A stretch of 64,000 nt of DNA from Vicugna vicugna (lineage: Eukaryota), in contig MU059052.1 of NCBI GenBank assembly GCA_013265495.1, positions 7,884,375 to 7,948,374 on the forward strand, in the 5' to 3' direction. This document shows positions 14,264-61,372 of the stretch, one piece after another. Every line of letters starts with the position of its first letter. The stretch's first letter is position 1. Below the pieces are notes generated by a model, which did not search any database, had not been told where the DNA came from, and saw only the letters and a program-made list of their open reading frames with translations. A program made the translations under genes and the position numbers.

Positions 14264-17200
14264 GTAATGTTTTGAAAACTACAACCACATTAGTAATTTC
14301 TACTTTTTGGCCCTGCTTCCTCAGACAGTAGAGATCGCTTATAAGTTATCCAGCATGGTTGCTAAGTCGTGGATCTTTTCTATTGTTTTCTAAGAAATAA
14401 ATTAAAAAATAAAGGTATTCTGACTTCATATCATTATTTTAGCTAATTGAGCCATAGTATCTATATTTAGAATTGTTTGATTTATTTGCCGTCCTTCAGG
14501 TTTACTGTGAGACTAAAATACTGAATGTCTCTTTTCTGAGTGGCAGATAAGTTTGTGGTAATCTTGAAGGACTGTTTATTAATCTCTTATTCCTTTCTTA
14601 AAAATTGATAACTTTGCAATCTCATCTGTATACTTGTGATAATAAATATGAATTGAGCATTCATGTCCTTGTTGTCAGGACACAGACTTGAATCTAGGTC
14701 TTTCCAAATTTTCAGCTGTAAATTTAATACTGAAAAACTTTGAAACATTTGAATTTAAAGAAATAATAACTCGGAGGTTAGAGTATAGCTCAGTGGCACG
14801 AGGTCCTGGGTTCAATCCCCAGTACCTTTATTAAAATAAATAAATAAATGTAATTACCTCCCTCCTGCAAATAAATAAATAAAAGACAAAGCTAAATAGC
14901 TTTAATTAAAAAAAAAGAAATAGTAACTCATGGCCATTGTCTTGGTTTGAATCAAGTGCCTATATATGGAGGATGAAGGTTAATGGATCAAAAATGTGAA
15001 TATTGTAGAGCTCTTATTTGCATGTTTTTTAAAAAGTAATATCATATGTCATATAAACCTAAAATCAGTATTTTAAGCATGTTCTTTTGAAGAACGTAAA
15101 TGTTGTTCATCAGTGGTTGTCAAACCATAATGTTAGTTTATAAGTCTGTTCAAAGTTAGAATTAGCATATTCTTTTTAGAAGGAAAAAAAATGATCAACT
15201 ATACATTATTAGGATGGCAGCTGCCTCGTTAGAATCAGTCTCACTTGGGAATCACTTCCGTATTGCATACTTCCATAGGAAATGGAGTTGTATACAGTGT
15301 AAGTTAAAGGAGAATGCAAACAAAATTTGGGATATTAGTCTCTTTTAAAGTCTTATTTATTTAGTAAGTTTTAGGGAACAAAGAAAGTTGTTTTAAATAG
15401 TGAAGGCAACATAAACCTTAGTCCTTCCCAAATGATGATAGAGTTGTTTATCTGTAGGGAGCTAAAATGTTCCAGGGAATTTTAAAATTACAAGACTTTA
15501 ATAACTTCCTTGTGCTACTCTTCAAGGGATATAGCAATTTGTCGATATGTCTGTTATGTTTTAGAAAGGGAAAGTCACTAGTCATTAGAAAGGGAAACTA
15601 TCACAAGATAGTTTTCATGGATTAGAATATTTCAGCTCTTTTTAAAAGTTGTATTTATTTATTTATTTATTTTTTGAATATATGTATTTCAGCTCTTAAC
15701 GTTAGCACCACTTTCTCTATTGTACTCAGTGGGCTTTGTGGAGAGCTGCACTGCCCTCTGCTGGGCACAGTTCTTACTTTACAGTCTTAAAATGTACTCT
15801 AGTTTGACTGCGACACTAGCCAGAAACTGCGAATTAAAGCCCATTCCTAAGTGATCTTTTGTCTAAAACTGAAGGTTAGTTTATAGTAGTTTTTTTTTTT
15901 GCTCTGTATTATCTTTATATTGCAGGTAACTTTCATCTTATACTTTCAGATAAAAATGTCAGATAAGAGCAGATCTCTATGGTATGAAATCCACTTATTT
16001 ATTTTAATTTTTCTACAGAGTCTCATCTGTTTACCTGGGTATGACCTGAGACTCTATTAAGAATGATAAAAGCCTAGGGTTTTGCCACAGCCTCCAATCT
16101 AGCTTGGGTTTATACAGTCTGTCCAGATGGTGTTACTTAGTAGTTCTTCCCGACGTGAGTCCAGACACATTTCTCAGAATTTTTGATAATTCCCTGCCCT
16201 TTTCACCAGAGCTGGAAGGCTTGAGGCTTGGGGCCTTTGACCTCCATATGAGCCATTTTCAGTACAGTCTTTGAAGTAAAATATTCTAAGCCTGATTGTC
16301 CTGAATGTAACGAAGTTTCCAGGTCTGGTCCAGGGCCACAGAACTGCTGATTGAAGTGGATGTGGGGTCCCAGGACCCCTCCTCTTCCATCTTCATGATG
16401 ACTCTGGACTTCTGAGATCCTGAGGGCTTCATGGATCATACTATGGAAATCAGAGCCTAATTCTTCTTCACTTTTACCAGTCTGGCCTTCTTTGCAGCCA
16501 CAAGAATGGTCTTTTGAAAATGGATACTATTAGGCAAACTTCCCAATAGCTTAAGAACCTTCAGTGCTTTCCCTCTGGACTTGATGTTAAACCTCAGCAT
16601 CTGGCTTCTGCTTACTCCACCAGCCTCCCCTCCCATTTCAAGTACCCTGTGCGTCGACTACTTGGACATATGCTGTTTCCTGAAATTTCTGTGCCTTGTT
16701 TCATGTTCCCTTTGCCTGGAAAGACCCTACATCTCACCCTACATCTCACACCTGAAAAAAAGTCCTTCCCATTCTCTTCAAGCCTCTGCTCAAGCACTGT
16801 CTCTGAGAAGTCTCCTTTGCTCTCTGTGTCAGTTAGCTTGGGCTTCCATGGCAAAATACCATAGACTGGGTGGCCTAAACAACAGAAGTTTATTGTCTTA
16901 CAGTTCTGGAGGCTAGAAGTCCAAGAAGTCCAGGATCTAAGCATCAGCATGGTTGGCTTCTGGTGAGGACCTGCTTCCTGGTTTGCAGATGGCCGCCTTC
17001 TAGCAGTATCTTGACATGTCTTTTCACTGTGTGTGCACGTGGAGAGAGAGATCTCTCTCTTCCTCTTCTTATATGGCCACTAGTCCTATCAGATAGGACC
17101 CCATCCTCATGATCTCATTTAACTTTAGCTCCTAAAAGCTCTATCTCTAAATACAGTCACATTGGGGGTTAGAGCTTCAACATATGAATTTGGGAAGGGA

Positions 17201-23200: not shown

Positions 23201-26200
23201 TTTAACACTAGATCTGTGTATCCTATAATCTACTTGATATCTTTACACTGTCTAATAGATATTTCAAACTTAACAGTAGTTCAGTTTTGGATACCTTTCA
23301 CCAACGTTTTTCCCCCATACCTTAAATCTGTTCCTCTTTTGCATTTGCACTCTAATAAATCACATTCCCTCTACCAACATACTCATCCCTGAAACCTGGG
23401 TTCATTTTTTAGCAGACTGGGTCTTCCCTTCACCATCACTACATCCACAAAGTTTAGTCAGTTTCACATTCAGGGATATCTTAAATCTGTTCCTTTCTTT
23501 TTATCTCCACTGTCAAATAGTCTAGTCCAAGCTATTATACATCTTACCTAGGACAAAACAGTAACCATCCAAGATGTAAATTTGACTCTTGAAGTAGCAG
23601 TAGAATCCCTGTTACTTAGAACTTTGCCATTGCAAACTGGATGCACCATTGACATGTTAATTGGTCTCTCTACTTCCATCTACCTCTAATCCATTCTCCA
23701 CATGTCAGGTATTGCAATTTTTGAAAACGATAGGTCTAATCATGTTATTCCATTACTTAAAAGCCTTCAGTGCCTCCTGATTCCTCGTATACCTAAGCCA
23801 AATTTCTTAATGTGCCCTACATACCCTTGCATGGTCTCATGCTTGCCTGCCTCTCCAGCCTTGCCACCACCCCCTGACTTACCTCACTGCAGTTGTACAG
23901 ACTTCTCCGATCATGGGACCTAAGGGTACAATCTCTTTCCTAATTCAGAACCACCACAAACATTCTTTCTACCCAGGATGTTTGGAAGCTTTTCTTCTGC
24001 TTTCTTTACCCCTTCTCAAATACACAAACACAATTCACACCTGTTGTACACATCTTTCAGATTCAACCTACATGTCACTTTCTTATGGAGTAATGTTCTT
24101 AAGGAGTCCTTTCTTCACTAGTTCCAAGTTAAAATTATATCCTGGCAAAGTATCCTTTGAGATACTTTCTTATCACAAATGCAGTTATACATGTGTGTGT
24201 ATATATGCTTGTGTTTTTATTTGTTTAATGTCTGTCTCCCCAGCAGGTGGTAAGTTCTAGAATGTCAGAAACTGGGCCTAATTTTTTTCACCATTATGTC
24301 CTAGTATCAAGTACATTGCTTGGCACATGGACACTCATATATTTTGCATGAATGAAAGATTACATGCCAGACCAAATTGGAGAAAGGGGATGGTGTCCCT
24401 CAACTATAAGAAGGCCAGAGATGTTCATTTATCTGTCATCTTATGTATAAGGGAGCATGTGATAGGTAATCACTAAATATTTGAAGAAATAAAAGGAGGA
24501 AGGAAAGGGAGAGAAAGAGGAAGAAGAAAGGAAATGGGAAATGAGAAAGGAGAGGAAAGGAAATTGGAAAGGAGACAGGAAAGGAAAGGAGAAAAGCTAA
24601 ACCTCAGTCTAGGATTACCATCCTTGATCAGAGAAGTTGTATTAACCTCCTTATCTCACTTAAAAAGAGACCAAAAAAAAAAAAGAAAAAGAAAAAGGTG
24701 AGTAATGGCTATGAACTATTATCATACAGTAAAATAGAAACCACTTGCTGTGATAGTTTTTTGGTGATTTTGTTTTATTTATCTGGTTGAGCGAATGAAG
24801 ACTACCAGGTCAGGTTACCCTCAGGGATGCCCCCTTGAGCATGCACTTTTTAATCAAAACCCAACTTTTTCAAAGTCTTATAAAACGAAGGTACACTATG
24901 TTTCCTTGCTTAAGTTTATGGATAAGCTACTTGTAATTCCCTCGCCCCCCGCACCTCCCCGCAATACTTGCCTTTGCATACCATTATATAGAATATGTGT
25001 AAAAGTATATTATGAACTATGTATGTATGATTGATTAGGTATAATTAATCATATAATTAATCTTGNNNNNNNNNNNNNNNNNNNNNNNNNNNNNNNNNNN
25101 NNNNNNNNNNNNNNNNNNNNNNNNNNNNNNNNNNNNNNNNNNNNNNNNNNNNNNNNNNNNNNNNNNNNNNNNNNNNNNNNNNNNNNNNNNNNNNNNNNNN
25201 NNNNNAAAGCTAAAGTCAGATGGAATTCCCATGTATAAACGCAATGTTATGATACTGACCAATCCAGTTGCTGCCAAGAAGAATGTCTCCATCAATACAG
25301 TTACCTATGAATGGGCTCCTCCTGTCCAGAATCAGGCATTGGTAAATATTAAGGGGGAGGGAAGTCCCTTAATTAAAGTTCCTGGGCTACTTATTTAGGG
25401 CTATTCCTTCAGTGACCTAACTGATCTCAGATCTGATATTTTTCTGGGGTTCCCATTACTCTGACTTCTAACTCCTATTAGTCTTTTGAAAGTAAGATTA
25501 GATAACTCATAGAATTTTTCCGACTACCTATATCTGTTAACCTTTTGGAAGAAATGGCCTGACATTTTTAATTAGATGAAAACCACATGTTTTATATAAA
25601 TCTAGTAACTTCTATCTTACTCTAAAGTTTTCTCTTAAGATGATAAAGAATATCTAAAGAATAGAATTTGTCATCTTTTTAGAACTCAAAAATATTCAAC
25701 ATTAAAGTTCTTTTACTATGTAAGGCAAAAACAATGCCATTTTGTGTCAAGTTCCTTCCACTATTATTAAACAACTAGATGAAACATTTGGAAATCTTCT
25801 AAGAAATTTAGTTAAATCATTGAAGTGAATCTTGTGATGATATCATTTTCTTATAATGATGAAAATACTAATGATCCTTAGGCCATTCTAAACATGCTGC
25901 CTAAAAAATTGTGTTCTCTTGCCATTGTATAATTGGAACAAGTAAACATTAGTAACCCAAGTCTTTTTGCAAATTGAAAAAAAAAGCTTTAATTTCATGA
26001 AGAAAAATGTGTTCATTTTTACTGACCTAAGCCGATTTAGTACCACTTAATGTGTTAACATCCCAAGATATTTATATTATGAAGATCAGCTGTTATTAAT
26101 GGATAAAACAGGCTTCTTTCTTAAGTTATTTGATTCTGATGAGTGTTATAAAATATTGTTTATCTGATGGCCAAGGCATCTCCCAGTTAACACTAGTCTC

Positions 26201-28724
26201 CCTGTGGTCCAGGCCAGGCAGTACATGCAGATGCTGCCCAAGGAGAAGCAGCCAGTGGCAGGCTNNNNNNNNNNNNNNNNNNNNNNNNNNNNNNNNNNNN
26301 NNNNNNNNNNNNNNNNNNNNNNNNNNNNNNNNNNNNNNNNNNNNNNNNNNNNNNNNNNNNNNNNNNNNNNNNNNNNNNNNNNNNNNNNNNNNNNNNNNNN
26401 NNNNNNNNNNNNNNNNNNNNNNNNNNNNNNNNNNNNNNNNNNNNCTCAGGGCTCCAATAGAACATACCTTCCTGGCGGGGATAGAAGCACCATGACAGCG
26501 GCAGGGGCCATGGAGGACAAATCGACCGAACAAAAAAGAACTCAGTATGTAAGTGAAGTGGTCATGATATTGGTCCAATTGGTGTATATTATGGGGTCAT
26601 TCCATTCGAATTTCGGGAGGGGGTGTATCCCTCTGTTTCCAAAAGGGAGTAGATGAAAAAAATGAATTATAATTCAGTTCAGGCTTATTTTAGAGAATCA
26701 TCATGTTTGAAACCTTAGTCTAAAGCCAAGTTTTCTCATTATCTGTTGTCAAAGATAATTGAGTTTTATGTATATATAGTAGTTAGCATTGGTGTCATGC
26801 TGAAATACGACATACAATCTAGAATCTGTTTCTAAACGTAATTTTGGTGTTAATTTTTGATCCATTCCCATAAATAAGAATAATATATACTTAGGTTAAT
26901 TCAGTTTTGCTTGTGAGAATGTGCCTAAAATTCAAACTTAAATTTATGTGGATAAAAGGTCAATCATATTTTTTTAAATCTCTCCTAGAGAGGGAAATTA
27001 AATCTTTTTTTATGCCTTGAAAGTAGAAGAAAATTGTGACACAGATGAACAACAACAACAAAAAGAACTAAACTTACTGTAATGTATTTCTCATAGATCC
27101 AGTTAGCATATCAACCACCAAGGTTTAGTCCTGTTAAAAAAAAAAAGTACTAATCAGTTCTAAGATAATCATTTTTGCGAGAACTACTTAAAATTGAGGT
27201 GAAAATTACTATTAGTCTTTTTCCATAAGCAGCTTTAATTCAATAAACAATGCTCTGTTACACATTAGGTACAAGAATTAGGTTTGGAGAGCCTGGAGAA
27301 AGCCAAGAGATTCCCTTTCACAGAAATACTAATACTGTATTGCCTACAAGAACAAATTACTAACTTCAGTAGAGTTTGTTTGTTTGTTTGTTTAAGTGGT
27401 TTCTTTGAATTCCTACTAAAACTGTTGATGAGAAATGCCAGCCTTAGGGTGACTAGATTGTTTTGGCTGGTTTCCCTTTCAGTCCTGCTACTGCTGCAAA
27501 CTGAGTATGAAGGAAGGAGACCCGGCCATCTATGCTGAAAGGGCCGGCTATGATAAACTGTGGCACCCAGCTTGCTTCGTCTGCAGTACCTGCCATGAAC
27601 TCCTGGTCGACATGATTTATTTCTGGAAGAATGGCAAGCTGTACTGTGGCAGACATTACTGTGACAGTGAGAAACCCCGGTGTGCTGGCTGTGATGAGGT
27701 ATGTTTTCTGGGGCCGCCTGCAGGCAGACTCCTTTCTGTATCCTTATATGGTCTCACCACGCTACCCAGGCCACCCATAGAGAGATGGCAACATGAGTTA
27801 ACCAAGCATCAGTTGCTTATTTACATCCAAAGAAGCTGAATTAAAAAACCTTTTAATTTCAGTCATTCTGAGTATCCATGTTAATTGTGCTGACCAATGA
27901 AAGACAGTCCAGAAGCAAAAGATTGATTTGAACTAATAACTTCAGTTCGAACTTTAGGTTATTTTCAGACTTCAGACCCAAGAAAAGTAGGCTGATTCTC
28001 CTTGTGGATCTAAATTCCTTATTGATCTAAAAAACCTGGCTTGGTCATTTGTAGCAAAAAGGAAAAAACCTGATTCATCTTATTTTTATCCTCTTTCCAG
28101 CTGATATTCAGCAATGAGTATACCCAGGCAGAAAACCAAAACTGGCATCTGAAACACTTCTGCTGCTTTGATTGTGACAACATCCTAGCTGGGGAAATAT
28201 ACGTGATGGTCAATGACAAGCCCGTGTGCAAGCCCTGCTATGTGAAGAACCATGCTGTGGTAAGGGGCATCCTTGGGATGTGGTGGCCTTGACCTGCTTT
28301 ATTTAAGCCCCTTACGAAGGAGAAACAGAAAGTAATACTGTCAGATAGGAAACATGTGATTCCTACCATAGGATGTTAAAATCCAGGTAATTTAAAAATA
28401 ATACATGCACTGATGATGATGAACAACCTCAGGGTTCTGTCTGCTCAGCTTACACTATAAAGTGCTACTTGATAATTAAAATGAAACAGATTAAGGTTTT
28501 TGGGGGTATCTTCATATTCTTGAGCTCTGTTTGAGTGTTTATGTTTCTGTTCATGTTACCAGGTCACCCACTAGGGCTTTGTTTTTGTTACCTAGAAATT
28601 ATACAGGGCCTGTTTCTTAAACCCTCATTGAATCAATATATATCAACAAAATTTTATAACAAAATTTGACTTCCATATTTAGATTTATTTGCATGAGTCA
28701 AACATTAAAACATTTAATGTGAGA

Positions 28725-31700: not shown

Positions 31701-33603
31701 AAACAAACACTTCAGGCACATTCATTCATAACATGTACAAACAAGAAGGCATATGGACTGTCTAGTGTTTTGTAGCTCTCAACTGGGTGGTTTATTTTCT
31801 GCTATAATATAAGGGTTATTCATTTTTTTTCTTCCTATACATGTCCAGCTAAAGAAGCAAATATGTGTGTTTGTGTGGATGTGTGTATGTCATATATTTA
31901 TTTGTATATAACATGCATATATACTAAATGGTATATGGAATGTAAGTGGTAGTATTCCATGATACTAGACTACACGTAAATTATGACTTATGACAGAACA
32001 GAAGCCAGTTAACTGCAAGTTATAGTTTTAGTGCAAACTAATTATTCTCAGACACTGTAAGTATTTTTGATTGAGTCCTTAATTACTTTGAACATGACTT
32101 TCATTTACTACTGTCTGGAAATTAGTGGTGTTAATAATCTCATGTGTCATAAGTAAGTCTGATAAAATTATCACTGCAAAGCTTTAATGAATGAGGAAAA
32201 TTCTTTAAGACTTTTTTAGAGCAGTTTCAGGTTTTCAACAAAATTGAAGAGATACAGAGATTTCCCATATCCTCCCTCCCCCTACACATGCACAGCCTTG
32301 CACATTATCAGCATTACTCACTGGAAGGGTATGTGTTTGTTTGTTTTTTAACCAAGGATGAATCTACATGGACATAATCATAATCACTCAAAGTCCACAG
32401 TTTATCTTAGGATTCATTCTTGATGTTGTGTATTCTGTGGGCTTGGACAAATGTATAGAATGGACAAATGACATAAATCTATCATTGTAATATCATAAAG
32501 AATATTTTCATTGGCCTGTATAAGCCCTCTGTGCTCTGCCTATTCATCTGTCTCACTGCCCCCAGCTGCTTACTCCTTGCAACCACTGATCTTTTTATTT
32601 TCTCCATAGTTTTGCCTTTGCTAGAATGCCATATAGTCATATAGTACATAGCTTTTTCATATTGGCTACTTTCACAGTGTTTAAGGGCCCTACATGACTT
32701 GATAGCTCATTTCTTTCTAGCTCTGAATAGTNNNNNNNNNNNNNNNNNNNNNNNNNNNNNNNNNNNNNNNNNNNNNNNNNNNNNNNNNNNNNNNNNNNNN
32801 NNNNNNNNNNNNNNNNNNNNNNNNNNNNNNNNNNNNNNNNNNNNNNNNNNNNNNNNNNNNNNNNNNNNNNNNNNNNNNNNNNNNNNNNNNNNNNNNNNNN
32901 NNNNNNNNNNNNNNNNNNNNNNNNNNNNNNNNNNNNNNNNNNNNNNNNNNNNNNNNNNNNNNNNNNNNNNNNNNNNNNNNNNNNNNNNNNNNNNNNNNNN
33001 NNNNNNNNNNNNNNNNNNNNNNNNNNNNNNNNNNNNNNNNNNNNTAAAACTTTTCTTTTTTAAAACTACTAATGTGAGATCCAGTAGAATATGCTGGAAC
33101 TAAACACACTGCTTTAGAACTCATCATCAAGACCTTCTGCCTTTAACGCCATGGGGATATCTTATAAGCATCAAATCACCTGTTTGGACTTCAACTGTTA
33201 TTTCTCACAGTGCTTCACATATAGACCCCCATTAATAGCTGTTAGCTATGAAGGTTAGCTAGAAGGTCATTCTCAGTTGTGTATCTTTGAGGTTGTCATT
33301 CTTAGTTTAATTTACCATCTGAAGAGATACTCTGAGTTTGCTCTAACATAGAAATGCTGCCATCACAATTTGATCTCTCATCCTTTTCTCTTCTTTGCAT
33401 AATTGACTTAACAGGTATGTCAAGGATGCCACAATGCCATTGATCCCGAAGTGCAGCGGGTGACCTATAACAACTTCAGCTGGCATGCGTCCACAGAGTG
33501 CTTTCTGTGCTCCTGCTGCAGCAAGTGTCTCATTGGGCAGAAGTTCATGCCAGTAGAAGGGATGGTTTTCTGTTCAGTGGAGTGCAAAAAGATGATGTCT
33601 TAA
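14178..33603 (+). CDS. TES: Testin (PET domain + three LIM domains), spliced CDS of exons 2-7 (M10-S421 equivalent, 412 aa); exon 1 lies upstream of the window
   Basis: Six exons with GT-AG boundaries (exon 3 acceptor hidden in Ns) translate in one continuous frame to [29 protein letters not shown]...[14 protein letters not shown]...[17 protein letters not shown]...[17 protein letters not shown]...[20 protein letters not shown]...[13 protein letters not shown]...[10 protein letters not shown], matching the recalled testin sequence. Confidence 0.98.
14773..14913 (+). mobile_element. tRNA-derived lineage-specific SINE (camelid Vic-1-like), internally deleted
   Basis: A-box tatagctcagtgg, B-box gggttcaatcc, (aaat)n tail; 16-bp TSD aaagaaataataactc (14757-14772) / aaagaaatagtaactc (14914-14929). 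Confidence 0.9.
16825..17219 (-). mobile_element. ERVL-MaLR solo LTR (MLT1A/B-like)
   Basis: gcttgggcttccatggcaaaataccatagactgggtggcctaaacaacagaagtttattgtcttacagttctggaggctagaagtccaag...acagtcacattgggggttagagcttcaacatatgaatttggg...acacaattcagtccatagca. Confidence 0.85.
17696..18253 (-). mobile_element. ERVL-MaLR solo LTR (MLT1D/E-like) inserted in a MIR
   Basis: tgtgctagttt...acaaattactacaaat..agcaggttaaaacaacac...ggtagaattcatttccttgtggttgtagg...aagggctcttgtgattagattgggcacac...aattctgcttaccaca. Confidence 0.8.
18254..18420 (-). mobile_element. MIR SINE (continues at ~17630-17695 on the other side of the LTR)
   Basis: taatcctcaaaatacc...tattcctattttatatatgag...gacttaggaaagttaaataacttactaagg...ggcagagctggaatttggacccaa. 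Confidence 0.7.
21575..23150 (-). mobile_element. Ancient L1 (L1M-type) fragment
   Basis: T-rich strand with decayed antisense-L1 motifs, e.g. tttttctttatacttagtctgaatttttcctagc, tttgagcatacttaactgtaaatttcctc, tatgtgtctgttaggtcaagcttgacaattgtattattcaaatcc. Confidence 0.6.
23190..24355 (+). mobile_element. L2 LINE 3' region
   Basis: atctccactg...ctagtccaagcta..atcttaccta; catgttattccattacttaaaagccttcagtgcctcc; tgtctgtctccccagcagg..taagttctagaatgtcaga; ends acattgcttggcacatggacactcatatattttgcatgaatgaa. Confidence 0.65.
24490..24597. repeat. Polypurine low-complexity tract (GGAAA-rich)
   Basis: ~105 bp almost entirely A/G on the + strand. Confidence 0.85.
25066..25205. other. N-run, 140 bp, covering the TES exon 3 acceptor and first 117 coding bases
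   Basis: Direct count; position relative to visible exon 3. Confidence 0.97.
25089..25341 (+). CDS. TES: TES exon 3 (5' part hidden by N-run 25066-25205; start inferred)
   Basis: Visible 25206-25341 reads [45 protein letters not shown], then donor TTG|gtaaat at 25342. Start 25089 assumes the same number of codons as the recalled human protein (253-bp exon). Confidence 0.88.
26213..26548 (+). CDS. TES: TES exon 4 (336 bp; PET domain and linker; 180 Ns internal)
   Basis: Acceptor gtctccctgtggtccag|GCC; [17 protein letters not shown]...(N)...[34 protein letters not shown]; donor TAT|gtaagt at 26549; frame is preserved across the gap. Confidence 0.95.
26265..26444. other. N-run, 180 bp, inside TES exon 4
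   Basis: Direct count; flanks are in frame. Confidence 0.99.
27483..27698 (+). CDS. TES: TES exon 5 (216 bp; LIM1 and start of LIM2)
   Basis: Acceptor tttccctttcag|TCC; [72 protein letters not shown]; donor GAG|gtatgt. Confidence 0.98.
28101..28259 (+). CDS. TES: TES exon 6 (159 bp; LIM2)
   Basis: Acceptor tttttatcctctttccag|CTG; [53 protein letters not shown]; donor GTG|gtaagg. Confidence 0.98.
28728..28768. repeat. (TG)20 microsatellite in TES intron 6
   Basis: Uninterrupted TG run of 41 bp. Confidence 0.97.
29065..29720 (+). mobile_element. L2 LINE fragment
   Basis: ccacttccattctttttattcaaagcca...tttctataatgtaaaactgatcatt...gtctggtacaccctcc...actcacttgagg...ctataaacagctggaggatagagc...tttccataccctcagtgtctg. 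Confidence 0.5.
32211..32731 (-). mobile_element. L1 3' end (L1MC-like), runs into N-run 32732-33044
   Basis: tttttagagcagtttcaggttt.caacaaaattga...tacagagatttcccatat...actcaaagtccacagtttatcttaggattcattcttgatgttgtgtattctgtgggcttggacaaatgtata...caaccactgatctttttatt.tctccatagttttgcctttgctagaatgccatatag. Confidence 0.85.
32732..33044. other. N-run, 313 bp
   Basis: Direct count. Confidence 0.99.
33415..33603 (+). CDS. TES: TES exon 7 coding part (LIM3, stop TAA 33601-33603)
   Basis: Acceptor ttaacag|GTA; [62 protein letters not shown]. Confidence 0.98.
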
Positions 33604-36460: not shown

Positions 36461-36592
36461 GGGGGGAGGGTATAGTTGAGCAGTAGAGTGTATACCTAGA
36501 ATGCACGAGGTCCTTGGTTCAATCCCCAGTACTGAATTAAAAATAAATAAATAAACCTAATTGCTCCCCCATCAAAACAAAACAACAAAAAT
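36461..36592 (+). mobile_element. tRNA-derived lineage-specific SINE (camelid Vic-1-like)
   Basis: ggggggagggtatagttgagcagtagag...gcacgaggtccttggttcaatccccagtac...aaataaataaataaacctaattgctccccc; 11-bp TSD aaaggtatagt (36450-36460) / aaaggtataat (36593-36603). Confidence 0.92.
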
Positions 36593-45355: not shown

Positions 45356-48041
45356 ATTCACCTCACCATACTGCCATAGTGAGCACATGTCTCTTCCCTT
45401 TCATATGAACTCTGTCAGGACCACATGAAAAAATAGTTTTCTTTGGCTTGTTCACTCTTGTACACGGATTTCTCCCATGCACTTTTGCAACTCCCAAAAG
45501 CTTTAGCTCATCCTTTAAAGAAAGTTCTTGTCTCCTTAAGGAATTGCTCCACATCACATTCATTCTGGGTCATGCAGCCAGCAGCAGCCCCATGTCAGCC
45601 TGCTAAAGACAAAACCCTTTCTGTTTCTGTACCAAATTCCTCATATTTTGAGCTGAAAACAAGAACTGCCCTGCTGAGGTGCCAAGGGAAACATACGTAC
45701 GTTACGAACTGTTTCTAACAAATGTTTTGGAGATTTTAAAGGGACAGCTTTCTAAATATCCGAGACATTTGCAAACAACCCAGAAACAAAGGCCAGATTT
45801 GCAGCTCGAGCATTGCTTCTGGGTTGTATAATCTTCTTTCTGAAAACAGCTGCTGTGATCATTCCTGATTATCAATTGTACAGTGATAACAACAAATGTT
45901 TTCTAGGGTTGAAGTAATCAAAATAATCCAGGTCTTTGATTTTGAAATGTGTATTGTTAATATAATTTTGGCATTCTTTAACAGAATTCAAAGCGGAATC
46001 AAAGGTTTATGTTCATAAAGTTTATAATCATTCCACAAAGTTCAACATTTGGCAGTGCTAAGGAAACTTAAAAAGAGTAATAAAAGATCACCATGAGGAA
46101 TTCAAAGCTGCCTTGTATGGTAATGCCGATTCAAATCACCACATAGCTCAGCACTGTAAGTTTCGCTGTAACTTTAGGGATGGATCAGTGTGTAGCTGCA
46201 GAGATTGCTAAGTATAACACAGAGGCTTGTCTGTTAACAATGAATAAGGGACTACGGAAAATTTACAATCAATGCCTCAGTTTTGAAAAATATTGGAGAA
46301 AAGAGAGAGAGTAAAACAGAGAGAGAGAAAGACAGAGACAGAGAGAACCATTCAATTTTTGGCTTCATTTGCTAAGTATTTATTAGCCTCTTTGACTGTT
46401 CTTCAGCACCAGCAGCTCCACTTTGCCTTGTAATCGTAAACTGTACACTTTTGCCAACCTGGAATGCACACTGTGTTCCTGCCCAGCCCAAGTTCACTCT
46501 GAATCCAAGTGCTCTCAAACCCTGCTCTCCCAAGCTCTTGATTTGTTGGCAGCCAGTAAAAGGGGTTTCCTTATGAATCATAGTGTGTGGGGAGGCTGAG
46601 TGGTATACCCTACACTTGTGCCATAATCTGTATGGAATGCATTTGAAACAGAAGACAGAAATCTAGAGTTAAGTTCAACATCTGACTTCAAGCACAATCT
46701 AAAAAATTGGAGTGTAATACGGAAAAATCACTGTGTCTCTACTGCTGTGGAAAAGTTTACTCCCGTTAAGATTGTATCCAAAGGAACAGGAACTAAGTTG
46801 CACACTTCAGGACTCTGAGATCTCCGATTAGGAAGGAGTCCATCTCTTGACCCTTTTAGAGGACACAGCTTTATGTGCAGTTAATATACTTTTATTCTGT
46901 CCTGTGGTGAGCTAAAGTGGGAAAGCTTTGGTTACACAGTTGCCATGGACAAATGTTTTCATCAATTCTATGGAACAAATGTAAAGTCTAATGGATCACA
47001 TATTTAACTGCAAGACGAAGGCTAAAGAATATTACAAGATAGGTGTGTTTATAAAAGTCAGAAGAGATGTGAGAACAATGTTTCCCACCACCTGTCATCA
47101 CCTGTTTGTTACACTGAAGAAGATGGGTTTACTTATCAGCTTTATGCATGTACTTGGCAAAATGAATTATGAACAGCTATCAAGCTCGAAACTTCATTTC
47201 AAAGGAACGAGATACACTGTACTAACCAAATCTTTTTTTCTTATTAAACTGGCTAAATATTCAAATATTTTATATTAAAAAAATAGACTGGTGAAGGCAC
47301 TTTCAATGAACAGAAAAACTGGAAAATCTGTAACTATAAACTTAGAATTTGTCCTAAAAGCTAAATGTATCAAACACACATATTCTTCCAAACTGTAGAG
47401 AGTAAGTCATGTTTCAGAAATGTAGAATGCACAAATGTCACAAAGTTTTCTCTGGTTACTAGGCAATAAAATGATCACACCTTCTTAATTCACAAATCTT
47501 AGAAATAAGTCTGATACCTGCTGATTTTGATTAATATTTTAAAAAATGAGTCAAAAATTATTTTGCTCATATACCTTGTAACGTATATTTCCAAATACAG
47601 ATGGGTAGTGTGAGAAAAGGGGAATGAATAATAAATAATCTATTTTGGATACGTATAATTTTGGCTTGGTAGAAAAGTCCCTTCACTATCAGTCGTCTGA
47701 TATGGTCACTGGGCTTGGCTGTCAGCATTTTCATCAGTACACAGAAAATATCAAGGCTGTGTTCACTCATTTATTCAACAATCAATCTCTCAGGGCTTAC
47801 CAAATTCTGTGATGGTTACAAAGTATACAAGGAACCCATAAGCTCAAGAAGCTCACCATGTGGGGAGAGAGGCAGGCATGCCAACAAGTAATTAGCACAG
47901 AATGTGTTAAGCCCTCAATAGAGGGGATCATGAAGGGAGCAGAGAGGAGACTAGCAGGGCAGACTTTGGGGAGAAAGGCAATATTTGAACTGGGTCATTA
48001 ACAAGAGTGTAAGTGACCCAGGAGGAGAAGGGGTGGGAGGT

Positions 48042-48860
48042 TGTGACATTGTGATTTATAATAAGAAATACATATTTGATCTTTGTCCAGTTCTTAGCAC
48101 AGGGCTCCAAAAACCCTTGGAATTCTCTAAGTGATAACAGAGATAAAGAAGTCTATAGTTATTCACAACAAGCCCCTCTCGACCACATTTGAGTCTTTCA
48201 GGTGAACCAACCACGTGATTAGAGGGTTGGAACTCTCAGCTCCACTCCTTGACCTCTGGGGATTGCAGAGGGGCTGGAGATGAGATGAATCACCAATGGC
48301 CAATGATTTAGTCAATCATACCTAGGTAATTAAGCCTCTGTAAAAAAAGGATTGATTCTGATTGCTTCCAAGTTGGGGAACATGTGGAGATGCTAGGAGG
48401 GTGGTGTGCCCAGAGAGAACACCGAAGCTCCATATTCCTTTCCACATACCTTGCCCCATTCATCTCTTCCATCTGGCTATTCCTGAGTTCTATTCTTTTA
48501 TAATAAACCAGTTATCCAGTAATTAAACTCCTTTCCAAGTTCCATGAGCCTTCCTAGCAAATTAATTAACCCAAGGAGTAGGTTGTAGCCAGTGGTCAGG
48601 GCACAGATAACAACCTGGACTTGTGACTGACATCTGAATTGGAGGGGAGGCAGTCTTGGACTAGGCCTTTGAGTTGTGGGATCTGGTACTCTCTCCAGGT
48701 AGACAGTATTAGAATTGAATTAAATTGTAGGATACCCAACTGGTGTCACACAATTGTCTGGTGTGGGAAGAACTACTGCACATTTGGTGACAGAAATGCC
48801 AGAAGTGAAGTAGTGCCACGTGAGAGTGAGGAAACACACATCTGACCACTGAAATGTTCT
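48042..48860 (+). mobile_element. MER21-family LTR inserted into an L2 fragment
   Basis: tgtgacattgtgatttataataagaaatacatatttgatct...gctccaaaaacccttggaattctctaagtgata...gtgattagagggttggaactctcagc...atcaccaatggccaatgatttagtcaatcatacct...ttttataataaaccag...attagaattgaattaaattgtaggatacccaactggtgtc. Confidence 0.75.
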
Positions 48861-49119
48861 CTGTAAGCATGAAAAGGAACATTGGAATGTGTTTTTTTTT
48901 TCCTGTAAGACAGATGGAGCAGTAAAGGGCATTTCACATAGATGACATTGTTTGTGTAGTAACAAGACATGTGAGTACAGGGTGAGAAGAAATAATAGTA
49001 GTAGTTTGATTAATAAAAGAGAGGGAATATTGGTGGAGAGAGTGATAGACTTTGGGCTGGCAAAGAAGAGAGGCAAGGTGTGAGTTTCACTGGAAGGCTT
49101 GCTAAAGAGTATGGACTAC

Positions 49120-49378
49120 ACAGCAATATTTTCCCAAAGGTGTTTTAATTTCATAGACCACTTATTTCTTGAGTTATTTCTAATGAACTGAGTTAAACAA
49201 AAGGTTTCTTATTCAAATAAGTTTGAGAAAGGCTGGATTTCTTTTCTGCAGAAGTTCTCACAGTCTTCAGTATGCTAATCCATATGTCTGTACAAGACAG
49301 GGTAATCAAGATAGAATTTCCTACACTTTTTTGACCAAGGAATCCTCTTTTGCACAGGTTATTTTGAAGAACCAGTGC
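49120..49378. mobile_element. Probable hAT-Charlie DNA transposon fragment
   Basis: ttttcccaaaggtgtt...ggtttcttattcaaataagtttgagaaaggctgg...ttctcacagtcttcagtatgctaa...tttcctacacttttttgaccaaggaatcc. Confidence 0.4.
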
Positions 49379-49723
49379 TCTACATAGGGTAATTTGGAAA
49401 TGCTACTATAAGCAACTGGGTGGAAATGAAAGTCTTAATTGTTAAAAGCCAGGAAGATCCATGGCCAAATGTGTATTTCAGAAATGCAACTTTGGCAAGA
49501 TTAGGGCAGAAGGATTGGAAGCGAGACAGAGTTGGAAGATGAGTAGGGAAGCTAAGGCAAAAATCTAAGCAAAGGCCATGGGAATGGAGGAAAAAGTCTG
49601 AATTTGGATTCAAATATAGGCAAAGTGTAAGCAGTGACCACAGTCACTTCAAGAAGCTTCTTGAGGTGATGACAGAAGTGACAACAGTCACAGCAGCAGC
49701 ACAGAGGGCATTTGTCTCTGGAA

Positions 49724-50048
49724 TTGCCAGCGTATAAACAGTTTTGGTGGAATTCTCTTGTCCCAAGAAATCCTGCCTGAATGTAGTTGCAAAAAAAGGG
49801 GAATCACCCTTTGGAGATAAGTAAGCACCTCTGTAGCTTCTTGATGATACTAGGGATGGGCCCCTGGAGGAAGCTGGAACCCCTATTCATCTAGGCAGGT
49901 GGAATTAATTTTTACTTTGGCAAATTGATATGGCACATGGTGTGACCGAAGCTCTAAGGACAGTCATTGCTCCATTTTACAGACAGGAAAACAAGGCACA
50001 AAGAGATTCAACTCGTCCAAGATGACAGTTAATAAGTGACAAAGACAG
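49724..50048 (+). repeat. Left arm of long inverted repeat (325 bp)
   Basis: Reverse complement of 51169-51497; 49796-50012 is base-for-base identical to revcomp(51208-51424). Confidence 0.97.
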
Positions 50049-51168
50049 TGATGGATGGAGCATACAGGCTAGGGAAGAGCAGATTGAGAGAAGATAGTAG
50101 TTCTGTTTGGGGCATGTTTCTCTAAAATACCAATATTATGTCTCAAGGGACACAGCTGGTAAGATGTGCCTGAAGATCTGGAAAGAGGGGACCATAGCGC
50201 CTAAGATTTAGAAGACATCTTTACCTATGATAGTCTCACCTGCTGGTGTTTTAAATTACATAACAGTTTCTCTTTTCATTCAGACAACTTCAGTTGAGCC
50301 AGAGCAAATTTATAACTTTAGCTTGGGCTTAATCTTTAATCTCTAAATATGACATATGAAATTTTACCACATTTTGATGAGCCAGACTCTCCCAAAAAGG
50401 GTACTGACATAAATGGCTTACTTATAATCAAGTTTAGAAGAAAAATTCAGGCATATTATAAATAATACATTCTCAATGGATATTAGAGATCAATAGTCAC
50501 AACCTGGCATCTAGACATTAACAACAACGAAGATTTTGTATATGTTCTCCAAAAGCTGACTGAAAATAATAACATACTAGTTGAGATTGAGATGAATTGA
50601 CTCAAAAATACCAGTCATGCGTTTTTAACCTTCCTAAACTTCATGATCTACAGAGCTTGTGTTCCAGGAGCAACTTGGATATTGGTTTGGTTACGTTAAA
50701 CAGCATTACAGTGAAAACATTTGCTTTAATAAAGACTTTCCTTTAACCTAAACCTCTGATTTCATTAGAAAATGGAGAACACTAGTGCTAAAGTAGATGA
50801 AACTAGCCAGGCTAAGAAAATGTCTGGCTTTCCAAACCTCAGGGTATAAAAATGAACAGGCTCAGAATATTTTGCAGAAATAAATATTATCTCAATTTTG
50901 TGTACGTAAGGCAGTTTCAACTTTTCCAAGACCAAATGCAAGATATTCTTGATGACTCTTGCCTGTTGTAACATGCCAGAGATACCTTCCTGTCATGCTG
51001 GGACACCAACTCACCCTAACACATAAATAGCTCACACATGATTTCTTTCATTTCTTGAAGCAATTATTTGAATAACAGCAGAGTAATTCTTTCAGTCTCT
51101 TTACTGGATCTAAAAGCTACTCAAATCATATCAAACAGAATATCTAGCCAGACAGCCTAGGTTTAATT

Positions 51169-51497
51169 CTGTCTTTGTCCCTTATTAACTGTCACCTTGG
51201 ACAAGATGTTGAATCTCTTTGTGCCTTGTTTTCCTGTCTGTAAAATGGAGCAATGACTGTCCTTAGAGCTTCGGTCACACCATGTGCCATATCAATTTGC
51301 CAAAGTAAAAATTAATTCCACCTGCCTAGATGAATAGGGGTTCCAGCTTCCTCCAGGGGCCCATCCCTAGTATCATCAAGAAGCTACAGAGGTGCTTACT
51401 TATCTCCAAAGGGTGATTCCCCTTATTTTGCAACTACAATTCAGGCAGAATTTCCTGGGACAAGAGAACTCTACCAATATTGTTTATATGCTGGCAA
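51169..51497 (-). repeat. Right arm of long inverted repeat (329 bp)
   Basis: Reverse complement of 49724-50048; 1120-bp spacer; inner end lies inside a MIR that continues to ~51146 only on this side. Confidence 0.97.
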
Positions 51498-52247
51498 GAA
51501 ACTGCAAAGAGCAAACTGTGACCTGAAGTGAGCGGAAGAAAATCTCTCAAAATGTTTGTGACCTCTCAAAAAGTAGTGTGTTAGAGAGTTAATAAAAATG
51601 AAGCTCAAATAGACAAACACAGGAACTTAGGATAATCCTAAACCCAAATATAGAAAGCAGCAAAGCATTTCTACCTCCATCTACCACCTTGTCAGGGTCT
51701 TTTATATTGTGATCAAAGAATGTCTAAATGGAAACCAAAATGAAAGCTGGAAATATTTTCTTATGGGTGATTTCCCTGATACTCATATTTTCTCCTAAAA
51801 TATGATTCAACATGAATTCATATTTTTCCCCTGAAAGCTATGGATTTTTTTTTATAGAAAGTGATTTGCTTTTTCACCACGAAGAGTCAGTAACCCAGTG
51901 AGAAGAAACTGCATCATAACCAGAACATGAGTTAAATACTACTAGCAGCCCTATGTGACAGCATCCAGGACAGTGTGTCCAGAGGCACTAAGTGGGCGTG
52001 CTACAATATACCCTGTCCACCTGGACCCTGAACCCTGGAGCAGCTCTCAAGGCCAGGAGTGACTCTCATGGCTCATCTGGAGCTTCTCAGAAGGCAGCTA
52101 GAATCCTGCTATGGTCCATGCAGGGGGCATATACAACAGCCATTCCTGACACTCTGCACAGATGGGATGCAGCAGCCAGTGCACCCCTTCACTTTAGCAG
52201 GCAGCTACCAGGTTCCTGTTGCTCACCAGGGATAGGGACAAAGGCCC

Positions 52248-52725
52248 TGTATTAGTTTCCTGTGGCTACTGTATGCATTACCACAAATGTGGCAGCTTAA
52301 AATAGCAGAAATTTATTCTCTTGTGGTTCTGGAGGTCAGAAGTCTGAAATCGAGGTGTCATTTGGGTTACATTCCCTCTGGAGACTCTAGGGAAGACTCT
52401 TCCTTTGCCTCTTCTGTCTTTTGCCTCTGCTGTTGGCATGTATTCCTTGACTTGTGGCCTTGTGGCTGCATCACTCCAATATCTGCCTCTGTGGCCATAT
52501 CATCTCTTCCTCTTCTTTCTGTCAAATNNNNNNNNNNNNNNNNNNNNNNNNNNNNNNNNNNNNNNNNNNNNNNNNNNNNNNNNNNNNNNNNNNNNNNNNN
52601 NNNNNNNNNNNNNNNNNNNNNNNNNNNNNNNNNNNNNNNNNNNNNNNNNNNNNNNNNNNNNNNNNNNNNNNNNNNNNNNNNNNNNNNNNNNNNNNNNNTT
52701 TAGGAGGTCATTATTCAACTTACCA
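52248..52725 (-). mobile_element. ERVL-MaLR solo LTR (MLT1C-like) spanning N-run 52528-52698
   Basis: tgtattagtttcctgtggct...attaccacaaatgtggcagcttaaaatagcagaaatttattctc...gttctggaggtcagaagtctgaaatc...ctctagggaaga..cttcctttgcctcttc...ggctgcatcactccaatatctgcctc; resumes ggaggtcattattcaacttacca. Confidence 0.85.
52528..52698. other. N-run, 171 bp
   Basis: Direct count. Confidence 0.99.
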
Positions 52726-53168
52726 TGGGACACATGAAGCTGCTGAAGGAATTGATGCTGGAAATGCCAAACAGCTTAAGGTGAACCTGGTAGAGGGTCA
52801 GGAGAGAGGCAGGAAGAGGAAGGAAGCCTAAGTGGAATTTGGGGAAGGGGTAGCTCCAGGCAATGGCCCCCCATTTCTTCACATACATTGAGTGTTTCTT
52901 TCTGTTTTCAGTTGATGTGCTGGCTGCCTGGTAGATTTTCTGACTTGTATATCTGGCCCTAAATAGAGCTTTGCCATTATCTCAAGAAACTTAATATGAA
53001 AAAATTCTATTGGATTAAAAAATCTGTTTTCTTTAACAAAGAAAATTTCAGTGTTACAGTTGTGAGTAGAGAAAGAAGAGGTTGCTAAAATTTTCAAATA
53101 TAATTTTAACTTGCAGTATTTTGATGGTTTTATTTTTCATCATCTATGCAAAAAAAAAGTGTCTAACC

Positions 53169-53422
53169 CATAGAATACAAACTTGTGATTGCCAAGGGGG
53201 CGGAGGGTGGGAAGGGATAGACAGGATTTCAAAATTGTAGAATAGATAAACAAGATTATACTGTATAGCACAGGGAAATATACACAAAATCTTATGGTAG
53301 CTCACAGAGAAAAAGATGTAACAATGAATATATATATGCTCATGTATAACTGAAAAATCGTGCTGAACACTGGAATTTGACACAACATTGTAAAATGATT
53401 ATAAATCAATAAAAAATGTTTT
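53169..53422 (+). mobile_element. 5'-truncated young L1 (3' UTR only) with perfect TSD
   Basis: 18-bp perfect TSD aaaaaaaagtgtctaacc at 53151-53168 and 53423-53440; L1-type end acaacattgtaaaatgattataaatcaataaaaaa. Confidence 0.92.
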
Positions 53423-53810
53423 AAAAAAAAGTGTCTAACCAACGATGATTATCAAGAGTTTGCAGCGTTCATCATTCAAAAGGCTCAAACAGAAAGTGCG
53501 TAGCCACTTTAGGTATAAAAGAAAGATCCAAAAAATTCAGGCTCACCAAAGCAAACTTAAGTTTCTCATTTTAAAAACAGCAAAGGTTTACCAGCTTTAT
53601 ATGATGGCAATAGTCAACTTCTTCATTAACACTTTGTGTTTTTACCATAATTACATAAATAAAGAATATAATCAGTTTTTTCAACAAATTATCTCCCTAA
53701 AGATGCCTCCAAATTACCTCCAATTTAGCTCAATGTGAAAAAGTTGGGAAAACTAATACATGAGTTAAGCATAAAAAAAAAGTGTGCTATATAAAATATA
53801 TATGTAGCTC

Positions 53811-53814
<4 letters not shown>

Positions 53815-53857
<43 letters not shown>

Positions 53858-53921
53858 CATTTATATAACACATACCTAGATACATACACACACCTATATA
53901 TGCTTTTATATGTCTATATCA

Positions 53922-53960
<39 letters not shown>
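53815..53960. repeat. Compound microsatellite: (TA)n 53815-53857 and (TCTA)9 53923-53960
   Basis: Directly visible; TA run interrupted once by G at 53844. Confidence 0.95.
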
Positions 53961-54254
53961 AGCAATAGCAGAAGAGTTCGGGAAAGAAGGAGCAAAGAAA
54001 ACAAGAAGATAACTATGATTAGATTTGCCTCAGATCCAGCAAAGCCCTTGCAGAAATTTGATGACTGAAAACCACAAAAAGGAAGTAGTCAGAAGTGAAT
54101 ATAAGGAGTGAGAAGTAAAAGAAAACTGATCAAAAGGAACAGAACAGCAATTACATAAGAAAACATTTTCTCTCTCTCAAGGCAATAGGGATTAGTGGTC
54201 AAAAATGAACCCAAACCTAAAACACTATTAACATTCACATTAAAAAATCTAATA

Positions 54255-59769: not shown

Positions 59770-61372
59770 TGGCTAAAGGCACCACCAAAAAGACTACTAG
59801 AGTTCATCAATGAATTCAGTAAAGTTGCAGGATACAAAATTAACATACAAATATTTCTTGTATTATTATACACTAACAATAAACTATCAGAAAGAGACAC
59901 TAAGGGAAGAATCCCATTTATAATAACAGCAAAAAGAATAAAATACCCAGGAATAAATCTAATAAGGAGGTAAAAGACCTGTACTAAGAANNNNNNNNNN
60001 NNNNNNNNNNNNNNNNNNNNNNNNNNNNNNNNNNNNNNNNNNNNNNNNNNNNNNNNNNNNNNNNNNNNNNNNNNNNNNNNNNNNNNNNNNNNNNNNNNNN
60101 NNNNNNNNNNNNNNNNNNNNNNNNNNNNNNNNNNNNNNNNNNNNNNATTTTTCACAGAACTAGAACAAATAAATTTAAAATTTATATGGAAACACAAAAG
60201 ACCCCTAATAGCCAAAACAATCTTAAGAAAGAAAAACAGAATGGTGGTATCATGCTCCCTGACTTCAGAATATACTACAGTAATCAAAATAGCATGGTAC
60301 TGGCACAAAAATAGATACATAGATCAATGGAACAGGATAGAAAGTCCAGAAATAAACCCATGGACTTATGGTCAATTTATGACAAAGAAGGCAAGAATAT
60401 ACAATGAGAAAGACACAGTCTCATCAATAAATGGTGCTGGGAAACTTGGACAGCTATATGTAAAAGAATGAAATTAGAACATTTTCTCACAACATATACA
60501 AAAATAAACTCAAAAGAGATGAAAAGTCTAAAAGTAAGACCTGAAACAATAAAACTCCTAGAAGAAAACATGGAGAACACACTTTGACATAAATCATAGC
60601 AATATTTTTTGGATCTGTCTCCTAAGGCAAAGGAAACAGAAGTAAAAATAAGCAAATGGGACCTAATTAAACTTAAAAGTTTTTGCACAGCAAAGGAAAT
60701 CAGTGACAAAATAAAAAGACAACCTACTGAATGGGAAAAAAATACTTGCAAATGATATGACTGATAAGGGGTTAATATCCAAAATATAAAAACAACTCAT
60801 ACAACTCAATATCAAAAAAGCAAACTGCCCAATTAAGAAATGGGCACATCTAAATAGACATTTTTCCAAAGAAGACTTACAATGACTGACAGGGACATGA
60901 AGAGATGCTCAACATCGATCATCATCAGGCAAATGCAGTCATAAAAAGAATGAAATTTTGCCATTTGCAACAACATGGATGGACCTGGAGTATTTATCCT
61001 TAGTGTGATAAGTGAGACAGAGAAAGACAAATACTGTATGTTATCACTTATATGTGGAATCTAAAAAATAAAACAAAGGAATAAATATAACAAAACAGAG
61101 ACAGACTCACCAATATAGAGAACAAACAAATGTTTACCAGTGTGGAAGGGGAAGGAGAGAAGGAGGGGCAAGAGAGGGGTAGGAACAAACAACTATGTAA
61201 ATAAACAAGCTACAAAGATAATGCACAGGGCAGGGAATACAGCTAGTACTTTATAATACATTTACATGGAGTATAATCTATAAAAATTTTGAATCACTAT
61301 GTTGTACACCTGAAACTAATATTATATTGTTAATCAACTATATCATAATTAAAAATAATTTAAAAATTAAAA
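59770..61372 (+). mobile_element. L1 ORF2 C-terminal part + 3' UTR, decayed, with internal deletion near 60937
   Basis: Translates KRLLEFINEFSKVAGYKINIQ..LYTNN...IPF.IT.KRIKYPGINL and [25 protein letters not shown] (L1 ORF2 motifs); 3' end atgttgtacacctgaaactaatattatattgttaatcaactata; contains N-run 59991-60146. Confidence 0.93.
59991..60146. other. N-run, 156 bp, inside L1 ORF2
   Basis: Direct count. Confidence 0.99.

Follow-up and report, generated by a model that had tools for sequence, protein, structure and literature searches.

Gene conversion within the chromosome keeps the two arms of sex-chromosome palindromes far more alike than the age of the duplication would predict, and inversion is much rarer (PMC3723533, PMC8981503). 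In the Y-chromosome palindrome P6, 56 conversions were recorded against 3 inversions, and conversion tracts in mammals can be as short as tens of bp or as long as about 1 kb (PMC3723533). In mouse cells, recombination is efficient only where more than 200 bp are identical without interruption (PMC3966225), and NAHR inversions have their breakpoints where the identity of the repeats is highest (PMC3961182). The instability of inverted repeats falls with a longer spacer, and it is short spacers that drive instability (PMC12887540). The pair of repeats described here, at positions 49724–51497 of the window (by which we mean the whole 64,000-nt stretch of Vicugna vicugna DNA that was analyzed), shares with the sex-chromosome palindromes (human P1–P8) the arrangement of inverted arms around a unique spacer. 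It is also like the palindromes in that the identity of its core exceeds what the divergence of its edges predicts (0 differences in 217 sites versus 10 in 108). We read the pair as an old inverted duplication, the centre of which would have been homogenised by gene conversion, and we give this reading a probability of about 0.7; the cause, the polarity and the age are inferred.

The repeat was located with a repeat finder and by local alignment, in which 49724–50048 is the reverse complement of 51169–51497. The arms are 326 and 329 nt long, respectively, and the spacer between them measures 1120 bp. In an in-window blastn comparison the arms match each other with E = 5e-150, which, together with the alignment, bears out the inverted repeat and the spacer length given in a preliminary description of this sequence. 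The pair is the sole inverted repeat of at least 60 nt within the 64-kb window. Local alignment also reproduced the core, in which, within the window, all 217 nt of the left copy agree with the reverse complement of the right copy (Table 1), as well as the 8 substitutions and one single-base indel that had been reported for the outer 72 nt of the arms; the indel, at 49781, is private to the reference. At the inner edge, where 36 nt on the left face 39 nt on the right, the 3 nt of indel noted earlier was found again, but the substitutions number 2 rather than about 3. Seven of the outer substitutions crowd into 49732–49772, and between 49773 and 50012 only one mismatch is left, at 49795.

Past the ends of either arm, both inside the spacer and outside the repeat, no homology rose above the level of shuffled sequence, and the duplicated piece was thus only about 0.33 kb long. 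A formerly longer palindrome was considered and dropped, as the sequence past the arms aligns no better than shuffles do. The junctions show neither microhomology nor a target-site duplication; the sequence is ...CTCTGGAA ahead of 49724 and GAAACTGC... behind 51497, with neither a direct repeat nor a TA. A DNA transposon or MITE with long terminal repeats was rejected because there is no target-site duplication, no other copy occurs in the window, and the arm carries a MIR-like piece (recognized by eye). A search for further copies of the arms in the 64-kb window found none. The spacer shows no internal symmetry, no further copy in the 64-kb window and no ORF longer than 69 aa, and a comparison of 47000–54000 with Rfam matched no family. 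At the repeat-search threshold, the only other repeat family in the window is a pair of tRNA-derived SINE heads at 14780–14862 and 36487–36569, which are 77% alike and have a tail of the (AAAT)n type.

Table 1. Coordinates of the arms, core copies, spacer, neighbouring TES exons and N runs in the window.
Feature	Position	Strand	Remark
LIM-domain ORF, TES exon	27453–27836	+	Pfam LIM
LIM-domain ORF, TES exon	28074–28289	+	Pfam LIM
Last TES coding exon, LIM3, ends in stop codon	33412–33600	+	Pfam LIM, E = 6e-7
Left arm, outer diverged edge	49724–49795	.	8 substitutions versus right arm
Left copy of 217-nt core	49796–50012	.	Identical to right copy in window
Left arm, inner diverged edge	50013–50048	.	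2 substitutions and 3 nt of indel; homology ends abruptly at 50048, within MIR-like sequence (by eye)
Unique 1120-bp spacer	50049–51168	.	35.6% G+C
MIR-like continuation past right arm into spacer	51147–51168	.	By eye, against MIR consensus
Right arm, inner diverged edge	51169–51207	.	Alignment
Right copy of 217-nt core	51208–51424	.	Alignment and contigs
Right arm, outer diverged edge	51425–51497	.	Alignment and contig starting at 51395
Six N runs, 135–313 nt, irregular	86–220, 25066–25205, 26265–26444, 32732–33044, 52528–52698, 59991–60146		

Contigs from three DNA runs that belong to three different studies (X1, organism A; X6, organism B; X7, organism C) were aligned to 49300–51900, as were those of an RNA-library run (X25). 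All are Logan contigs with k = 31, in which bubbles have been popped and variants may have been dropped, and contigs of this kind cannot join an outer edge to an inner edge over 217 identical bases. In X1, X6 and X7 alike, the outer-left contig stops at 49825, a single contig of 1255 nt (49983–51237) carries the spacer together with both inner edges, and the outer-right contig begins at 51395. The core is a contig of 217 nt in organism A and of 213 nt in organisms B and C, and in all three runs each neighbouring contig overlaps it by exactly 30 nt, that is, by k−1. Both ends of the spacer contig join the same end of the core contig in opposite senses. The walk through the contig graph is arm, spacer, inverted arm, and no other walk fits. 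All four arm junctions, with the edge differences specific to each arm, were found in 3 of 3 independent DNA runs. The depth of the core contig, divided by the mean of its three single-copy neighbours, is 1.61 in X1, 1.68 in X6 and 1.63 in X7, which amounts to about two copies.

These results bear on whether one arm was created during assembly, by a mis-join or by the filling of a gap. The six N runs of the window look like estimated short-read scaffold gaps, or masking, and one of them (52528–52698), the nearest to the repeat, lies 1 kb to its right; no N run lies inside it. In addition, a 1-nt error or private allele of the reference lies in the left arm. However, the four arm-specific junctions and the two-copy-like core in three independent runs exclude a mis-join in the reference, and an artefact of assembly, refuted as far as contigs can refute it, is almost certainly the wrong explanation. 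The repeat is a true feature of these genomes, as had been supposed.

The private 1-nt difference is at 49781, where the reference lacks a T that X1, X6 and X7 all have and that matches the right arm; the gap reflects an allele private to the reference or a small error in it. Two further positions in the aligned region differ from the window, 51853 (C in all three DNA runs versus T) and 51717 (G in X1 and X7 versus A), which points to minor or private alleles of the reference, or to errors in it. The 34 nt at 49660–49693 also match inside long unrelated contigs of X1 and X7, with 3 mismatches each, which indicates that a similar short sequence occurs elsewhere in the genome.

The divergence between the arms is distributed very unevenly. 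The edges hold 10 differences over 108 aligned sites, which corresponds to a K2P distance of 0.10, and the core holds 0 over 217; the two counts differ with p = 1.2e-5 in Fisher's test. At the rate of the edges, the probability of finding 0 differences over the 217 sites of the core is 7e-10, and among 200,000 random placements of 13 difference events none left a clean run of 217 nt. Even with 4 hidden differences allowed in the core, the contrast is retained (P = 8e-6). This unevenness supports the older duplication with a later homogenised centre that the preliminary description had put forward. The core has a G+C content of 44.7%, against 35.6% for the spacer and 37–41% for the edges, and the GC-richer core fits weakly with GC-biased conversion.

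Of the 10 changes at the edges, 7 are transitions and 3 are transversions, a ratio in keeping with ordinary neutral change. A different origin for the same pattern would be a young inverted duplication made by template switching (MMBIR), in which error-prone synthesis produced the diverged edges at birth and conversion is not needed. The differences do cluster at both ends of the copy, and template switching between inverted sequences is described as homogenising arms and as making clustered changes (PMC8604942). However, the 7:3 transition bias resembles ordinary drift. Furthermore, seven substitutions in 41 nt lie far above the mutation density usually associated with breakpoints.

The contigs of X25 provide a view of the age of the repeat. 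Over 1114 nt they show 20 differences from the window (1.8%), about ten times the value for organism B or C, and thus come from a much more distant relative. An X25 contig begins at 49981 and its 31st letter, 50011, differs from the window; the corresponding positions in the alpaca-type runs are 49983 for the start of the spacer contig and 50013 for its first arm-specific letter. Because the X25 contig starts within 2 nt of the predicted place, the junction with the adjoining identical stretch is suggested to exist in this relative as well, with the proviso that at low depth the ends of contigs can be coverage gaps. Given that the arms differ at their edges (0.10) several times as much as the two lineages do (0.018), the duplication probably predates the split between the lineage of the window and that of X25. 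An X25 contig also departs from the window behind 49555, where a run of A is followed by unlike letters; this departure is probably a lineage-specific insertion or deletion and may be a retroposon tail.

The polarity of the duplication is suggested by the stretch 51147–51260, which we take for the central part of a reversed MIR element, as judged by eye against the MIR consensus. By the same visual comparison, the MIR-like stretch crosses 51169 into the spacer on the right only, and the left arm ends at 50048. Because this sequence runs past the arm on the right only, the left arm would appear to be the copy and the right arm the original, in agreement with what had been proposed beforehand. 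Against the MIR consensus, again by eye, the difference at 50022 is presumably derived in the left arm and that at 50037 in the right arm. Such a split of derived states between the arms is what drift in both copies would produce, and not what copying errors would. Both this split, read by eye from the consensus, and the apparent presence of the junction in a relative that is 1.8% diverged argue against the young duplication by template switching, which we consider highly unlikely. A search of the 64-kb window for other MIR copies yielded marginal matches only (E of 0.06–0.1). An exact-pattern scan of metagenome contigs for host contamination found no orthologous copies, and a search of public assemblies for exact proteins of the local ORFs gave no match.

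The core had been called perfectly homogenised. It is identical in the window reference, but its depth in the contigs is 1.6–1.7x rather than 2x, which leaves room for one or two arm-specific variants in the core. The core contig of organisms B and C has a 4-nt deletion (AGGC at 49893, in the context AGGCAGG) and a C>T change at 49882, and organism C (X7) is additionally changed at 51387. Should these changes be located in both arms, they would be the arm-shared, species-specific substitutions that the preliminary description named as a sign of concerted evolution. Organism A and organisms B and C are thus separated by 2–3 events in the 217-nt core, compared with 2–3 (about 0.1%) in the single-copy flanks and spacer, which together measure about 2290 nt. 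The depth ratio would be 2.0 for identical arms and 1.76 for a single arm-specific cluster made up of the 49882 SNP and the 4-nt indel, and the extra change in X7 brings the expected value to 1.60. Barring a technical loss common to the runs, the observed 1.61–1.68 fits the model with arm-specific variants at least as well. Because bubbles are popped and the depth is 1.6–1.7x, the core changes of B and C could sit in one arm only. The excess of events in the core would be explained more simply by old arm-to-arm differences, of which each run kept one branch of the bubble, and we place roughly even odds on this and on changes shared by both arms. In addition, if the N runs are gaps, a single collapsed node of the assembly graph may appear at both places in the reference.

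These observations open the possibility that homogenisation lies in the past and is no longer ongoing. The arms would then be about 99% alike, and the C/T site at 49882, the AGGC indel at 49893 and perhaps 49833 would be fixed differences between them in all three taxa, hidden because the reference and each set of contigs retained a single branch of the bubble; no change would then be concerted between species. Besides the depth ratios and the excess of core events over the flanks, this is in line with the boundaries of the core, which are the same in A, B and C, and with the known tendency of contigs to drop variants. On the other hand, both cores are identical in the reference, and the same 1.6x is found in X1, in which no variant is seen; the shortfall could therefore be a technical loss, in which case B and C were changed in both arms. 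The comparison also covers three runs only and has no statistical power. We regard fixed arm differences as a serious possibility, somewhat short of an even chance. That the core is still converting, with the AGGC indel placed in both arms within the last few million years, and that the spacer occurs in both orientations among camelids, appears unlikely; if true, few segments that flip naturally in a mammal would be smaller than this spacer, and the repeat would be only just long enough for homologous recombination. The "perfect" identity of a core may itself arise from the method of assembly in short-read references and k-mer contigs, and long reads are needed before recent homogenisation or flipping is claimed.

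The genes near the repeat were identified from their coding sequence. The exon at 33412–33600 matches the C-terminal end of human Testin (PDB 2iyb/2xqn) with E = 8e-41. As judged from this match, TES ends near 33.6 kb plus UTR, and the repeat, about 16 kb downstream, is intergenic. RNA-library runs contain 6–22% of the sampled sequence words, and RNA libraries can contain DNA. In X25, the one RNA run that was aligned, the core is uncovered except for about 30 nt at its inner end, and the 16 changes in the aligned pieces include 4 A>G and 2 T>C, with no A>G excess.

This setting has consequences for the possibility that the repeat is a functional or dynamic element, either because crossing-over in the core flips the spacer or because the repeat is the source of a long hairpin RNA. 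The geometry allows both. The two arms, as RNA, would pair in a duplex with a computed energy of about −596 kcal/mol, and conversion implies recombination intermediates, some of which resolve as inversions (PMC3723533, PMC3961182). However, inversions are about 20 times rarer than conversions in P6 (PMC3723533), and a core of 217 nt is at the lower limit for efficient recombination (PMC3966225). The location about 16 kb past TES, the absence of an Rfam family, and a spacer that shows nothing gene-like also weigh against an element of this type, as does the RNA run, in which the core is missing beyond about 30 nt at the inner end and no excess of A>G is seen. The perfect dsRNA envisaged in the preliminary description would require a transcript, but the repeat lies far past the last TES coding exon, and the RNA fragments reach only about 30 nt of the core and, in the single RNA-library run aligned (X25), show no A>G excess. 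Because the spacer is 1.1 kb long, the suggested hairpin or cruciform and the link to the fragile site FRA7G are unlikely as well (PMC12887540). Overall, we find a functional or dynamic element scarcely probable, and nothing points to an influence on TES or on a phenotype.

In the reading that we prefer, a small piece of ordinary intergenic DNA (about 326–329 bp) would have been duplicated in inverted orientation, which placed the left copy 1.1 kb upstream of the right arm. The copies would then have drifted to about 10% divergence, which now survives at the edges only, and the central 217–240 bp would later have been overwritten, once or repeatedly, by non-allelic intrachromosomal gene conversion. 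The edges would have escaped because tracts must end within homology and because mismatches suppress exchange. Sites near the end of the homology would be converted least, and the mismatches that build up there would block further exchange. The sharp edges of the identical core could be a consequence of this block. A function is unnecessary to explain the repeat, and we propose that it is a neutral by-product of recombinational repair. The case would then illustrate, at a very small scale, how conversion holds the centre of a repeat identical while the edges escape. This identical tract sits just above the threshold of roughly 200 bp for efficient recombination in mammals.

The likeness to described systems extends to several classes of repeat. 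Ectopic conversion between short repeats likewise leaves a tract of identity with sharp edges inside more diverged homology, and the 217 nt of uninterrupted identity seen here slightly exceed the mouse-cell requirement of more than 200 bp (PMC3966225). The documented cases mostly concern duplicated genes or pairs of Alu elements, whereas here the copies are a lone pair of otherwise unique non-coding sequences, and the conversion event is seen through its footprint. The inverted repeats behind human NAHR inversions also contain a highly identical stretch and bracket a unique segment. Those inversions span 5.1–226 kb, and the repeats given as an example measure 7 kb (PMC3961182), whereas the repeats here are 0.2–0.3 kb and the segment is 1.1 kb. 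Fragile palindromes of the PATRR type have a spacer of near-zero length and usually AT-rich arms, in contrast to the spacer of 1120 nt and the arms of 37–45% G+C at this locus.

The comparison with sex-chromosome palindromes goes further in mechanism than in form. Their arms range from 9 kb to 1.45 Mb, whereas the arms here are 0.33 kb long and contain no genes, and, unlike in the palindromes, only the central two thirds have been homogenised. Ampliconic palindromes in particular have arms of many kb with testis-expressed genes; the present arms, of 326–329 nt, are gene-free and intergenic near TES, which is not known to be sex-linked. Thus, judged by its sequence features, the repeat would be a gene-converting inverted repeat in the manner of the palindromes rather than a member of the ampliconic class, and in kind it is already known, as gene conversion between neighbouring repeats with the biology that would be expected of it.
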